In this document: in pieces, positions 41,413 through 45,012 of the stretch
How the letters are laid out: the number at the start of each line of letters is the position of its first letter
Numbering within the stretch: position 1 is the first letter of the stretch
Sequence record: PQ287320.1
DNA length: 64,000 bases
Strand: one strand, 5' to 3'
The notes under the pieces: generated by a model
Seen by the model: the letters and a program-made list of their open reading frames with translations, nothing else
The model's database searches: none
What the model was told of the DNA's origin: nothing
Position numbers and translations under genes: made by a program

Positions 41413-41441
41413 TTGACGGCTCCCGCCACCTCCCCTATCAT
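41413..41441 (+). promoter_or_regulatory. Sigma70 promoter TTGACG-N17-TATCAT
   Basis: Near-consensus hexamers with ideal spacing; no protein gene downstream. Confidence 0.7.
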
Positions 41442-41447
41442 GCAGCC

Positions 41448-41755
41448 CTATCCTAGGCGCAGCACTGCTTCGGGCTACTCAGGCATCGTGACCTGGGTCC
41501 TCGGCTATGAAGCCTGAGATCGGGGAGTGGACTGCTATCCTCGATCACGACCGGAGGGCGCGTAGTCCCTCCTGAGGTGAACGCCGGCCAAGATAAGGCG
41601 ACGAGGCGTGACGCTGGGGAGAGGACCCAGGCTTGTCGTAGGCGTCGGGCAGTCTGAAGCCGGGTGTCCTATCCCGTGCCCGGCGTCTACGACAGGCGAA
41701 AGCCGACGATCTCCTTGAGCGGAGGGCGGGATTGGCCGATCGGGGCCTTTTTTGA
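41448..41755 (+). ncRNA. Unassigned highly structured RNA candidate (~300 nt, possibly extending to 41889)
   Basis: 20-bp helix 41631-41650/41677-41696 with 3 G-U pairs (which fixes the + strand); crossed helices ctcaggc/gcctgag and tcgtg/cacga; GGCGTGAC-GAGA module; TGTCCTAT loop. Confidence 0.55.
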
Positions 41756-41854
41756 GAGCCAAGGACATCCCGTCATAGGTCCTGGCCCGGCTACGAGGTA
41801 GGCAGGCCGGTAAACCGGAACCTCTGAGGCGCGTCGCCAAGATACAGCAGACGC

Positions 41855-41889
41855 AAAGAAGGCCCCGATCTGGCGATCGGGCCTTCTTC
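41855..41889. terminator. Bidirectional intrinsic terminator
   Basis: aaagaaggccccgatc-tggc-gatcgggccttctt with A and T tracts on either side, between converging RNA units. Confidence 0.75.
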
Positions 41890-42020
41890 ACATCCTGGTG
41901 GTCGGCTAATAGCCTCGACAGGCCTAAGTCCTCCAGGTCAAGCCTGGAACCACCCGGCCTTGCGGGGTCCAAAAGGACCCATCACCATGCGCCTTGCACC
42001 CGAAGGCTCGGGGCGCGAAT

Positions 42021-42109
42021 TGGAGCTTCGGGAGGGACTCGAACCCTCATAGGTGTCACCACCAGCAGAGCTTTGCAGGCCCGCGCCTAACCTCTCGGAC
42101 CACCGAAGC
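42021..42109 (-). tRNA. tRNA-Cys(GCA) with a long variable arm
   Basis: GCUUCGG/CCGAAGC acceptor, U73, encoded CCA, loop CU-GCA-AA, T arm GAGGG-UUCGAGU-CCCUC, variable arm GGUG-GUGA-CACC. Confidence 0.85.
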
Positions 42110-42292
42110 ACAAAAGGACCTCGACGCCCGAAGGCCCGAGGTCCGATCCGTAACCAGGGGAGGGCCGTAGCTGTCCCTGACCCTGAACGACAGGTGGCGG
42201 GCTTGGTCGTCATCCCGTCAGGCTCGCGGCGCCGCTCGCCTGAACCGCCGATATGCCACGAGGGCAGTGATCCGCAGGTCCCCACAAATAGC

Positions 42293-42326
42293 AAAAAGGC
42301 CACGATCGCGAGGACCGTGGCCTTTT
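42293..42326 (-). terminator. Intrinsic terminator downstream of the GOLLD-like RNA
   Basis: aaaaggccacggtc-ctcgc-gatcgtggccttttt on the - strand. Confidence 0.8.
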
Positions 42327-42329
42327 CGT

Positions 42330-43205
42330 TTTCCGATGGGCTGAGACTACACCCATCAGCAATCCCGCTTCGAGGATTATTCCCCAGGTGCGACCCCAGG
42401 TATTCCCTCGACGTCCACCAGACCCCTTGCGGTAGTCCAGTCCGAGATCATCGCCGCCGTTCTTGCGCACCCCGAAGGGATTGCGGGTCTGGCGTTTGAC
42501 CCATCATGGCGAACTACTCGACAGTTCCTTCCCCGCTGGGCTTGCGACCCACTCACCGGCGCTAACCGGCTGACGAAGCTCTTCCTATCGACACCTCGCG
42601 GGCTTGCGACCCTTGAGATGACTCCGTTACCCGAAGGCCGGAGCATTTGGCGACTTACGTCCGCCACTGGACCAGTCTTTGCGTTTTTCATCGAAGCGGG
42701 GATTGAACCCGCGACCGACAGCTAGGATGGCTGTTGCACTACCACTGTGCTATTCGCAAACCCACCAAGACGTGCTGGTCCAGTTGTTTCCAGGGCTTTT
42801 GACCCCAGAAATGCAACACGCCTCATGTCTTTCGCCTTGCGGGCTACTCGACTGTCCTTCGGGACCTCTGTCTCATCCAACCCTTCGGCCAGACTGCCCA
42901 GCACCCCTTGGACTGAAGCAAAGCTCTTCACCGCGAAGTGTCGAACCCTGCAACCCAAACGGTTATCCGTACTCCTTGGATCGAGTTGCGTGGGTAGTCC
43001 GGTGGCGCCGGACTGGTGGTTAAAGCCTCAGAGTTACCCAGGCCCCACCTTGTCTCCCTCGATCTTCAGGTCTATCCCCTTTTGCAAGAGGCGGCCAGCT
43101 TCCCAGCCCGGACCCGTCGGCTTCCTCTGTCCTCTTGCGAGGTCGGGCGGCCTATGGGAGACCGTCCCTGTCACCCCGTCGCCGGGGCTTTCGTCGGAAG
43201 CGACG
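42330..43205 (-). ncRNA. GOLLD-like giant ornate RNA (~870 nt)
   Basis: - strand motifs match the GOLLD consensus as I recall it, in the expected order: GAGUAGCCCGCAAGGCGAAAG (42829-42849), GUGUUGCAUUUCUG (42806-42819), AGCACGUCUU, CCGGUUAGCGCCGG (42556-42569), CCGCAAUCCCUUCGGGGUG (42466-42486) and GUAGUCUCAGCCCA (42337-42350). Many GNRA and UUCG hairpins; own promoter and terminator; phage tRNA-cluster context. Confidence 0.8.
42688..42759 (-). pseudogene. Degenerate tRNA-like domain (UCC, Gly-like) embedded in the GOLLD-like RNA
   Basis: Intact D arm GCAC-AGUGGUA-GUGC, anticodon stem ACAGC/GCUGU and T arm GCGGG-UUCAAUC-CCCGC, but A33, a broken acceptor stem and no CCA. Confidence 0.7.
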
Positions 43206-43211
43206 ATCAGG

Positions 43212-43240
43212 GTTGTAGCCGGGCCGGATGTCGTCGTCAA
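43212..43240 (-). promoter_or_regulatory. Promoter of the GOLLD-like RNA: TTGACG-N15-GCTACAAC
   Basis: The -10 matches the Caulobacter housekeeping consensus GCTANAWC exactly; -35 is TTGACG. Confidence 0.8.
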
Positions 43241-43363
43241 CGACTTTTTCGTCCTTGATCGAACTTTTTCGACACTATCGCGCCAAGTGGTTGATTTCCG
43301 TGAAGCTTCCATCAGGGCCTCGCCTACGCGCGAAAGGAATGTCGTCCGTCGTGACGTTTTTTC

Positions 43364-43393
43364 TTGACAGCGGGCCAAAGGCTCTGCTAGAGG
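43364..43393 (+). promoter_or_regulatory. tmRNA operon promoter TTGACA-N16-GCTAGAGG
   Basis: Caulobacter-type -35/-10 directly upstream of the tmRNA acceptor piece. Confidence 0.7.
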
Positions 43394-43399
43394 AGGGGC

Positions 43400-43770
43400 A
43401 TCGTTGTAATTCGGACAACGGAACTGGCGGCAAGACAGGGGTGCGAATCCCCTCGCCTCCACCATCGACGCCCGGCGCTGGGAGTACGCGACTCCTGGGC
43501 AGGGAGTGTTACCCTGGCGGGCTGCGGCCCGAGCCAAAGGTAGCCGGGCGTCGTTGATGGGGGCGACTAGCTTTCGATTGGCGCTCGGGTCTGGAAGACG
43601 CAACGGTGGGTGACCTCCACATCGGCTTGCCGGTGATCGGGTCAGGCAACATTAAATGTCGCCGCCAATGACAACGACGTCGTGGCTTTCGCCTCGGCTC
43701 GTGAAGCCATCGCCGCCTAATAAGCGGTAGAGGAGCCCGCCGGGAGCTTGGCAACAGAATCCCGGCACCT
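43400..43770 (+). ncRNA. ssrA: Permuted two-piece (alphaproteobacterial-type) tmRNA
   Basis: Acceptor piece ends AGGGG-UGCGAAU-CCCCU-CGCCUCC-ACCA (43464). Coding piece starts GGGGGCG at 43559, giving a G3-U70 Ala identity pair. Tag ORF (V-A-)ANDNDVVAFASAREAIAA** at 43658/43664-43723. 3' GGGAGCUUGGCAACAGAAUCCC motif; helix-2 complementarity between the pieces. Confidence 0.95.
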
Positions 43771-43776
43771 TCTTGT

Positions 43777-43849
43777 GGGCGTCGCACCGTGATTTTCACC
43801 CGGTGTCCTAGCCGGTGGGCCTAGCCCTGGCGCGGCGCGACGCTCTCCA
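43777..43849 (+). other. 73-nt tRNA-sized element ending in UCCA (pseudo-tRNA or tRNA-like RNA)
   Basis: GGGCGUCGC/GCGACGCUC 9-bp closing stem, then U-CCA; internal hairpins; no canonical T loop. Confidence 0.45.
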
Positions 43850-43991
43850 AGACCCCTTTCGCAGGTGGGGACACGAAATAGGCGATCTGTCGGGAAAACC
43901 GATCACCAACCCCCGTGTCCCCATCTTCGAAAGGCGGTCTGGCCCTCCCCTCCTTTGGTGTCCTATCCAAGGGGCCGGGCCGCCTTCAGAA

Positions 43992-44070
43992 CGCGGGGTA
44001 GAGGAGTCCGGTTGTCCTCGTCTGGCTCATAACCAGAAGATCGTGGGTTCAAATCCCATCTCCGCACCCA
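43992..44070 (+). tRNA. tRNA-Met(CAU), initiator type
   Basis: CGCGGGG 5' end with a C1xA72 mismatch, UCUGG-CUCAUAA-CCAGA anticodon arm, GUGGG-UUCAAAU-CCCAU T arm, encoded CCA. Confidence 0.92.
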
Positions 44071-44530
44071 GGACCCGAACGCCGGGGGACACATCAGAAC
44101 GATGGCGTGACAAGCCCGGAGAGAACGGGCACTCCAGTCCGGGGTATGAGGCCGGACTAGCGGACGCCGTAGTGATAGCAGGCGTGACACCCGGAGATAG
44201 CGGGACCGATTTTCCAGGCTTCATGCCCGGCGTATAAGACCGCAGGCCTCGGCCATCGGGCAGTGTCAGGGGATGAGGCTAGTCCTCGGCCAACCACCTA
44301 GCGGTGGGGCCAGGGCATGGAGCTTGGAAAGTCGGTTCGGTACGGTGGCTCGACAGGTAAGGCATCGGCCTCATAAGCCGAGGGGCTCGTCCCCAATACT
44401 GGTTCAAATCCAGTTCGTACCTCCAAGCTCCAGAAGTGCGCTACGTCCGTATAGCTCGGCCAGTTCGTGCTCCGGGGTGCTTCAAGAAGGGTATGGCCAG
44501 AAATGGTATGTAATAAGCCCTCGCTTCTGT
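44071..44530 (+). ncRNA. Unassigned structured RNA region enclosing the CAU class-II tRNA
   Basis: Two copies of the ACGCC..GGCGTGAC-stem-GAGA module; hairpins agtccgg/ccggact and tgcccgg/tcgggca; an 11-bp inverted repeat clamping the tRNA; no credible ORF. Confidence 0.5.
44339..44425 (+). tRNA. tRNA(CAU) (Met or Ile2) with a long variable arm and U73
   Basis: GGUACGG/UCGUACC acceptor, UCGGC-CUCAUAA-GCCGA anticodon arm, variable arm GGGG-CUCGU-CCCC, T arm ACUGG-UUCAAAU-CCAGU, then U-CCA. Confidence 0.85.
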
Positions 44531-44545
44531 GACACAATATGACGC

Positions 44546-44573
44546 TTGACCGCCGGCGGTGGCTTGCTAAGCT
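44546..44573 (+). promoter_or_regulatory. Putative promoter TTGACC-N14-GCTAAGCT
   Basis: Caulobacter-like hexamers about 35 nt upstream of a terminator. Confidence 0.45.
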
Positions 44574-44604
44574 CTCCTCGTCGGGATCGTCCCGCGTCCT
44601 TCCC

Positions 44605-44640
44605 AAAAGAAAGCCCCGCAGTTCGCTGCGGGGGCTTTTC
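44605..44640. terminator. Bidirectional intrinsic terminator closing the RNA island
   Basis: aaaagaaagccccgcag-TTCG-ctgcgggggcttttc. Confidence 0.85.
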
Positions 44641-45012
44641 TCATTCTCCGATCACCCGGAGCTTCTTGGCTTCCCTGGCGCGGATCATCGCCGCGTAGCG
44701 CGACACATCCTGGAGGTGGGCTTTGGCGATCAGGTCGGGCGCGCCGACCGGACGGAAGGGGACGTGCGGGGCGATCTCGGTATAGCGCCGCAGGAGCGGT
44801 TCGAACTCCAGGTCCCGGCTCTTGGCGATCCGGGCCAGGGCGCCGGCGACGATCGCCACCACGAGTACATTGGTCGGCGTGTCCTTGGTCAGGTTCCATA
44901 TGCCGGGGATCGTCTGCCCCGGATGCAACGCCTGTCGGGAGACGTCATCGGCGGCGGCGCGGAAGAGGTTCTCGTAGGGCACGTTTTGGTACATGCCGGG
45001 CACAATACCCAT
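44641..45012 (-). CDS. Hypothetical protein
   Basis: 123-aa ORF ending at the terminator; phage codon bias. Confidence 0.6.
   Translation of the reverse strand: MGIVPGMYQNVPYENLFRAAADDVSRQALHPGQTIPGIWNLTKDTPTNVLVVAIVAGALARIAKSRDLEFEPLLRRYTEIAPHVPFRPVGAPDLIAKAHLQDVSRYAAMIRAREAKKLRVIGE

Follow-up and report, generated by a model that had tools for sequence, protein, structure and literature searches.

The 268-nt spacer that separates two methionine-type CAU tRNA genes in Caulobacter phage BL57 (PQ287320.1), a phiCbK-like phage of the Dolichocephalovirinae, is made up of two new motifs that are confined to this phage group: a small two-hairpin element, which we call the M module, and a larger junction domain, LH. 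The conservation, structure, strand, modularity and positions of the spacer are observed directly in the genomes compared. From them we infer a transcription unit, the nucleases that would act on its product and any role for a module, and we judge it evenly balanced whether the spacer (44071–44338) is a modular processing and leader spacer of a polycistronic tmRNA–tRNA operon. Positions are those of the window, the whole 64,000-nt stretch of DNA that was analysed, which matches BL57 at 100% identity; the BL57 record coordinate is the window position + 62000. Work on Caulobacter biology uses phiCbK-like phages as standard tools; the stable-RNA island of these phages contains, besides GOLLD and the two-piece tmRNA, these two further conserved RNA motifs.

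The stable-RNA island of BL57

The spacer lies among the following elements.

42021–42109, − strand: tRNA-Cys(GCA), a member of the stable-RNA island
42338–42824, − strand: GOLLD RNA with an embedded tRNA-Gly (Rfam, 169.7 bits against a gathering score of 150)
43372–43811, + strand: permuted two-piece tmRNA (ARAGORN, Rfam)
43992–44070, + strand: initiator-like tRNA (CAU) with a C1xA72 mismatch (ARAGORN; Rfam tRNA, 51.9 bits; sequence)
44071–44338, + strand: structured spacer, 268 nt, between the two methionine-type CAU tRNAs
44339–44425, + strand: tRNA2, CAU, 87 nt, with a type-II-like long variable arm, discriminator U73 and encoded CCA (ARAGORN, Rfam, fold)
44614–44640, + strand: intrinsic terminator ending the + strand stable-RNA unit

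The initiator-like tRNA forms the upstream border of the structured spacer. The tRNA2 cloverleaf matches the tRNA model RF00005 at 48.2 bits (gathering score 29), and ARAGORN calls it tRNA-Met(CAU). The gene order tmRNA, tRNA-CAU, spacer, tRNA-CAU, helicase genes is kept across the Dolichocephalovirinae, in a comparison that covered Shapiro-, Poindexter-, Colossus- and Bertelyvirus together with Brevundimonas phages; the length of the spacer between the CAU tRNAs ranges from 134 to 498 nt in the phages compared. Between BL57 and its relatives the spacer is 78–89% identical, which is similar to the adjoining helicase genes (81–84%) and well above the whole-genome identity of 62.6% quoted for phiCbK and Rogue (PMC3556154).

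Several features of the island deserve mention in their own right. tRNA-Cys(GCA), on the − strand, and tRNA2, on the + strand, have a common type-II-like scaffold: their D arms are similar, their variable arms are long, and each has U73. The long form of the two tRNAs occurs in Shapiro-, Poindexter- and Colossusvirus, in the Brevundimonas phages and in UViG1629 (an IMG/VR contig); in Bertelyvirus each has the normal length of 77 nt. GOLLD was seen in the scanned Shapirovirus-type loci (phiCbK, Swift and Ccr10) and in BL57, and has an embedded tRNA-Lys in Karma, Swift and Magneto; it is missing from the scanned Poindexter- and Colossusvirus and Brevundimonas loci. Downstream of tRNA2, a sigma73-like promoter (TTGACC-N14-GCTAAGCT) at 44546–44573 (+) is followed by a hairpin and then by the terminator, an arrangement kept in the phiCbK group; 44546–44640 (+) could encode a small RNA of ~60 nt, and the terminator could serve the converging − strand gene too. 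At the other end of the island, 41413–41756 (+) contains a promoter-like site (41413–41441), a third M module, a long hairpin and a terminator-like GGCCGAUCGGGGCC-U6 near 41735–41756. It may be a non-coding transcript of ~300 nt, and it overlaps a doubtful annotated ORF of 42 codons. Outside the window (record 139541–140827), BL57 encodes an annotated RtcB-type RNA 2′,3′-phosphate:5′-OH ligase, a possible partner in tRNA or tmRNA repair or processing.

We searched the spacer against known RNA families. Rfam 15 (4227 models, including ROOL and the other large RNAs that an earlier note, made from the BL57 sequence alone, had wished to see scanned) gave no match in 44071–44338 at E<=10 in a permissive scan of 41500–45000, so that the note was right to assign the region to no family. 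It had also likened the layout to the tRNA domain of GOLLD; here the GOLLD model (RF02032) found no match in 44071–44530 even at E<=10, and tRNA2 adjoins the structured RNA instead of being embedded in it. We found neither phiCbK transcriptomes nor earlier accounts of LH or M elements in the literature, and the 2012 genome paper on phiCbK-like phages reported no functional RNAs beyond tRNAs (PMC3556154).

M modules, hairpin P3 and the LH domain

The spacer elements, and the third M module, are as follows.

41581–41630, + strand: third M module (descriptor scan; syntenic in all relatives)
44079–44130, + strand: M1, hairpin ACGCCG..UGGCGU, GAC-AA, hairpin GCCCG-GAGAGAA-CGGGC (descriptor scan)
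44137–44157, + strand: P3, GUCCGG-GGUAUGAGG-CCGGAC (covariation among relatives)
44164–44204, + strand: M2, hairpin ACGCC..GGCGU, GAC-A, hairpin CCCG-GAGAUAG-CGGG (descriptor scan)
44204–44338, + strand: LH domain (fold, covariance model, covariation)
44229–44267, + strand: LH hairpin B, variable
44269–44287, + strand: LH hairpin C, with the invariant 9-nt loop UGAGGCUAG (loop 44274–44282)
44288–44311, + strand: LH hairpin D, variable

An M module consists of a hairpin ACGCC..GGCGU, a linker made of GAC and 1–2 nt more, and a hairpin of 4–6 bp with a purine loop (GAGAGAA or GAGAUAG; AGA elsewhere). The two 'GGCGUGAC-GAGA' modules that had been remarked on previously are real (GGCGTGAC at 44104–44112 and 44181–44189), and prove to be copies of this dispersed motif. 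MAFFT misaligned the second hairpin when the copies were aligned, and we therefore scanned with a structure descriptor and not with a covariance model. The descriptor finds three copies in the window, all on the + strand, against 0.26 expected, and zero in 100 kb scanned elsewhere in BL57. Seven copies are packed into ~3 kb of PW, five of them found by descriptor and the other two, M1 and M3, by pattern; an 8-kb stretch of UViG1629 contains seven as well. In both, M copies lie 8–17 nt 5′ of tRNA-Cys, and others lie in leaders just upstream of start codons. M modules are confined to the stable-RNA region of the phage group, and in IMG/VR the motif occurs in this group only; the IMG/VR scans as a whole returned the same phages and one new contig. 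A two-module pattern matched at least 120 loci in metagenomes, all of those listed being chance matches by nhmmer, and the pattern is too loose.

Pairing is retained in M copies as the stems change. First-hairpin stems include ACGCC/GGCGU, ACGUC/GACGU and ACGCG/UGCGU; second-hairpin stems include GCCCG, GCUCG, CUGGG, GUGGG, GGGGCC, ACAGCC and GUAGCC, among others. All copies have the same GUGAC linker, and purines predominate in the loop of the second hairpin (GAGAG-type or AGA). Within the spacer, the second hairpin of M1 has one compensatory pair (C-G to U-A), its stem varying among copies and lineages with the loop retained, and the first hairpin of M2 has one as well (ACGUC/GACGU in BL10). 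Because complementarity rather than sequence is kept, we rejected a transcription-factor palindrome. A T7/SP6-type promoter, suggested by the resemblance of AGGYGUGACAC to SP6, was also set aside: both hairpins covary, and no phage RNA polymerase is reported. Layout and positions would suit an antitermination signal of the nut or boxA–boxB kind, a linear element followed by a short purine-loop hairpin, on the transcribed strand and in leaders, though the sequence has no similarity to known boxA or boxB. To guess from its position, the M module most likely serves as a leader and spacer signal on nascent RNA, where some factor binds or processing takes place.

Hairpin P3 covaries: its stem, GUCCGG/CCGGAC in BL57, is replaced by AUCCGG/CCGGAU in PW and by GGUCCA/UGGACC in UViG1629. 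It corresponds to agtccgg/ccggact in the earlier list of hairpins, from which ccac/gtgg is likewise present; tgcccgg/tcgggca and gagg/cctc, from the same list, are not pairings backed by covariation. The P3 loop and 3′ strand, UAUGAGGCCG (44145–44154), are fully complementary to the anticodon arm of tRNA2, CGGCCUCAUA (44366–44375). In seven phages this complement is perfect over 10–11 nt (shuffle P 0–0.015); it is interrupted in Rogue and RBC8, and Bertelyvirus and UViG1629 lack it. Either a working anticodon trap or what is left of an inverted tRNA fragment could account for it. The LH loop has AUGAGGC in common with the P3 complement.

In LH, a 24-bp stem (44205–44228 with 44313–44336) closes a four-way junction. 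Folded alone, the domain has a minimum free energy of −81.8 kcal/mol (z −7.9). The stem is 98% paired among nine close relatives, with 5 compensatory pairs. In an alignment of 15 sequences from at least five lineages, which was fitted to the covariance model and whose pairing counts are consequently somewhat inflated, 97.7% of cells are paired, 23 of the 36 pairs have changed on both sides, and 19 of the 22 stem pairs are compensatory. No shuffle in 500 scored as high for pairing, and no slid register came near. A separate MAFFT/RNAalifold alignment gave compensatory changes at 16 of 36 pairs. The loop UGAGGCUAG is invariant in 15/15 sequences, and its closing pair varies (A-U, U-G, C-G and U-A). 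Covariance model R1 scores the BL57 domain at 118.6 bits on the + strand versus 36.1 on the − strand; throughout, it gives one match per locus, at 84–125 bits on the + strand versus 33–43 on the − strand. G-U pairs on the + strand become A-C mismatches on the − strand, and together with the asymmetry of the model this identifies LH as a + strand RNA.

The same evidence bears on the suggestion that what is conserved here is not an RNA but either a small protein gene or an element that acts as DNA (a cruciform, a packaging site or a protein-binding site). ORFs of 65–140 codons do overlap the region on both strands, and one database record annotates a CDS in the LH domain. However, these ORFs run through the tRNA genes, neither they nor the neighbouring ORFs match Pfam, and the indels in the region among relatives are not multiples of three. 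The stems vary yet pair, with G-U pairs on the + strand only, and the model score is strongly strand-asymmetric; we consider a DNA or protein explanation highly improbable.

LH occupies more than one position in the relatives. A gap of 1–2 nt separates its paired stem from the start of the tRNA in BL57 (2 nt), RBC8, Rogue, BL10 and Bertelyvirus, and in the Bertelyvirus members CcrBL9, CcrSC and RB23 LH lies directly 5′ of a tRNA-CAU of normal length (profile search, E 1e-14 to 2e-12). In phiCbK, Karma, Swift, Magneto, Ccr10 and RBC57, 100–145 nt intervene between LH and tRNA2, and in UViG1629, where LH is flanked by the tmRNA and tRNA-fMet, the nearest tRNA is ~270 nt away from it; contact with the RNase P site is therefore not obligatory. 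The permuted tmRNA of the Brevundimonas phages Kikimora and Bajun carries LH within its intervening segment (E 1.4e-7 and 2e-6 by nhmmer; R1 85.3 and 84 bits). PW retains only an imperfect hairpin of ~22 bp at the LH site, the cap having been lost, which makes the stem the most persistent part. The LH model found no match in the Domovoi locus examined, and an LH hairpin pattern gave 0 matches in 185,579 bacterial genomes. In UViG1629, M1-P3-M2 adjoins tRNA2 with LH elsewhere, and in Bertelyvirus LH adjoins tRNA2 with no M1-P3-M2; the 5′ unit and LH are thus separable modules and not one fold.

The intervening segment of the BL57 tmRNA itself (about 43466–43557) has an outer stem of 11 bp without a mismatch (CGACGCCCGGC), inside which lie three hairpins. 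Its layout is LH-like and its sequence differs, and the LH model finds no match there. tRNA-like fragments separate LH from tRNA2 in phiCbK (positions 2745–2847 of the locus analysed), Karma, Ccr10 and RBC57; among them are a T-arm (GCCGGUUCGAGUCCGGC) and the 5′ half of a tRNA (GGCCUUAGCUCAGUCGGUAGAGCGC). T-arm-like minihelices occur in the spacers of PW, Colossus, Domovoi and Kikimora. The spacer locus is a hot spot for tRNA-derived rearrangements.

The 11-bp complement around tRNA2

The earlier note had proposed a single RNA of ~450 nt (44071–44530) that holds tRNA2 at the tip of an 11-bp helix, sequesters its UCCA end, and displays or conditionally releases the tRNA. Three features are involved.

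44318–44328, + strand: 5′ arm of the 11-bp helix, within the 3′ strand of the LH stem
44422–44432, + strand: 3′ arm, tRNA2 UCCA plus 7 nt of trailer; pairs with the 5′ arm in BL57 only
44426–44533, + strand: trailer insertion, 108 nt, bordered by CAGAAG..CUUCUG (locus comparison)

In the sequence, the complementarity between TGGAGCTTGGA and TCCAAGCTCCA is exact and does include the UCCA end. If perfect inverted repeats of 11 bp or more are counted, with loops no longer than 150 nt, the window however contains 18, and ~5 such repeats are expected by chance under a first-order Markov model. In the nine relatives, the helix is missing: the homologous leader and tRNA trailer retain just 3–5 contiguous pairs. 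What nucleotides 44318–44328 do instead is pair with the upstream strand of the LH stem, in 10/10 phages (with one non-pairing position in Ccr10 and RBC57), and this pairing covaries, as in UCCAGGCUUCA, UCCGAGCCGCA and UCCAGGCCGCA, each of which fits its own partner. The minimum-energy fold of 44071–44530 contains the upstream pairing. In the ensemble of 44071–44540, the clamp has a pair probability of ~0 and the competing stem one of 0.95–1.0, and forcing the clamp costs 10.7 kcal/mol. The clamp does appear in the predicted fold of an RNA begun at 44229, from which the upstream strand has been removed, but the competing stem is transcribed first.

The trailer follows directly on the tRNA2 CCA, and was found only in BL57 and in RBC8, RBC63 and RBC11. 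Since it folds no better than shuffles (z +0.5) and is restricted to the BL57/RBC8 group, it is not part of the conserved RNA, and we discarded 44426–44540 as a structured RNA candidate, with its z of +0.5 and its two lineages only. Homolog search and covariation, among the checks suggested with the original proposal, divide the region: 44071–44338 is conserved and covarying, and neither the clamp nor the trailer (44426–44533) is. We conclude that the clamp, absent in relatives, with a probability of ~0 and outcompeted by the LH stem, is a BL57-specific coincidence that arose from the first bases of the trailer insertion. The idea of a novel structured RNA beside a tRNA survives, in that the spacer is conserved, covaries and belongs to no database family. 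That of one 450-nt RNA clamping or displaying a tRNA does not, as the structure stops 2 nt before tRNA2, the trailer is a lineage-specific insertion, the 5′ modules and LH are separable, and GOLLD, ROOL and T-box models give no match at E<=10; we give it next to no credence. Helices around tRNAs that are seen in a single genome may be accidents, as the BL57 clamp cautions.

Proposed function and comparison with known systems

We propose that transcription would start at a sigma73-like promoter near 43364 and proceed through the permuted tmRNA, the initiator-like tRNA, the spacer and tRNA-CAU to the terminator at 44614–44640. The spacer would be carried in this transcript as two separable units, the 5′ unit (44079–44204; two 'GUGAC' modules and P3) and the LH domain (44204–44338). 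By pairing RNA on either side of the junction, the LH stem would create an RNase III-type site for double-stranded cutting. An RNase III substrate needs about two turns of double-stranded helix, and LH provides a near-continuous helix of the kind expected (at least ~20 bp), with 24 pairs at probability 0.95–1.0 in at least five lineages. A cut in this stem, by host RNase III or a similar double-strand nuclease, would release tRNA2 from the RNAs upstream of it. The next cut would be made by RNase P at 44338/44339, 2 nt past the paired stem, with exonucleases trimming back the 3′ end of the upstream RNA. In the Brevundimonas phages, LH would be the segment to be excised to yield the two-piece tmRNA. 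We read LH as a processing stalk because the elements are always on the transcribed strand of one untranslated operon and take interchangeable positions between tRNA-like units, because the stem is the most persistent part, and because in two phages LH coincides exactly with the piece that has to leave the tmRNA precursor for it to be split.

Some observations fit a cutting site less well. LH is found at a distance from tRNA2 in the phiCbK group and in UViG1629, it is missing from the Domovoi locus, and the pairing counts carry the inflation of a model-fitted alignment. The invariant 9-nt loop and the conserved junction exceed the needs of a cutting site, and the main rival is therefore a trans-acting role, which we regard as a serious though less probable reading: the spacer or the LH cap would be a stable non-coding RNA, freed by the flanking tRNA-processing enzymes and binding a phage or host partner. 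The partner might be a protein that recognises the UGAGGCUAG loop; it might also be CAU tRNAs, whose anticodon loops the (U)AUGAG loops would contact. Constancy of the loop while its closing pair changes would suit such an RNA, as would the keeping of the fold in three operon positions, which is expected of a unit freed by tRNA-type processing, the anticodon-arm complement in P3, and a spacer as conserved as the helicase gene. Yet PW has only the stem and no cap, the anticodon complement is broken or absent in several of the relatives, and the base before UGAG is set by stem pairing and not by pairing with U36. A more adventurous version, which we think unlikely, makes LH a new RNA class of phiCbK-like phages that directs its own excision, by a dedicated nuclease or by self-cleavage, or that acts with P3 in capturing CAU tRNAs via (A)UGAG loops, with the RtcB-type ligase as a candidate partner. 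If true, self-directed excision of LH would supply the step still missing for the splitting of permuted tmRNA precursors and the separation of the tRNAs.

A T-box-like leader was also weighed, in which an AUG 'specifier' loop would pair with the CAU anticodon and UGGA with the tRNA UCCA. BL57 resembles a T-box in that its loops complement the anticodon, with AUGAG in two of them, and UGGA complements NCCA, the UUGGA in the LH 3′ strand being complementary to UCCAA. Unlike a T-box, it has no match to the model at E<=10, no expression platform with a competing terminator and no regulated gene downstream. The UUGGA is buried in the fully paired 24-bp stem, the A of AUG varies in the LH loop, and the complementarity is not conserved. 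We rejected a T-box riboswitch on these grounds and consider the T-box-like reading very improbable.

The reading of the spacer as a processing and leader element can be set beside known systems. A true GOLLD RNA with its tRNA-Gly lies 1.2 kb off, on the other strand, and GOLLD typically occurs near phage tRNA islands (10.1101/2024.12.08.627333). The BL57 spacer differs from GOLLD in being ~270 nt long and modular, with its tRNA adjoining instead of embedded, and in having no match to the GOLLD model. The tRNA cluster of phage T4 contains small stable structured RNAs, species 1 and 2, that are released by tRNA-processing enzymes. The spacer would be like them as a structured RNA co-transcribed with phage tRNAs and possibly released by tRNA-processing enzymes; sequence, fold and host clade are unrelated, and we draw the likeness with no claim of homology.

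Bacterial rRNA operons combine processing stems with boxA in leader and spacer. By analogy, the BL57 unit may be viewed as an untranslated stable-RNA operon with a long stem around a cut-out segment, spacer tRNAs, and signals repeated in leader and spacer; we found no sequence similarity, and the BL57 stem encloses a small junction domain and not a mature RNA. Another close counterpart is the permuted tmRNA intervening segment of Kikimora and Bajun, to which BL57 LH is homologous in sequence and structure, with the same outer stem, three hairpins and UGAGGCUAG loop. In BL57, by contrast, LH lies between M2 and a complete tRNA, outside the tmRNA of the phage (43372–43811). The occurrence of LH both as a tRNA leader and as a tmRNA intervening segment offers a handle on the cutting of permuted tmRNA precursors and of phage tRNA operons.
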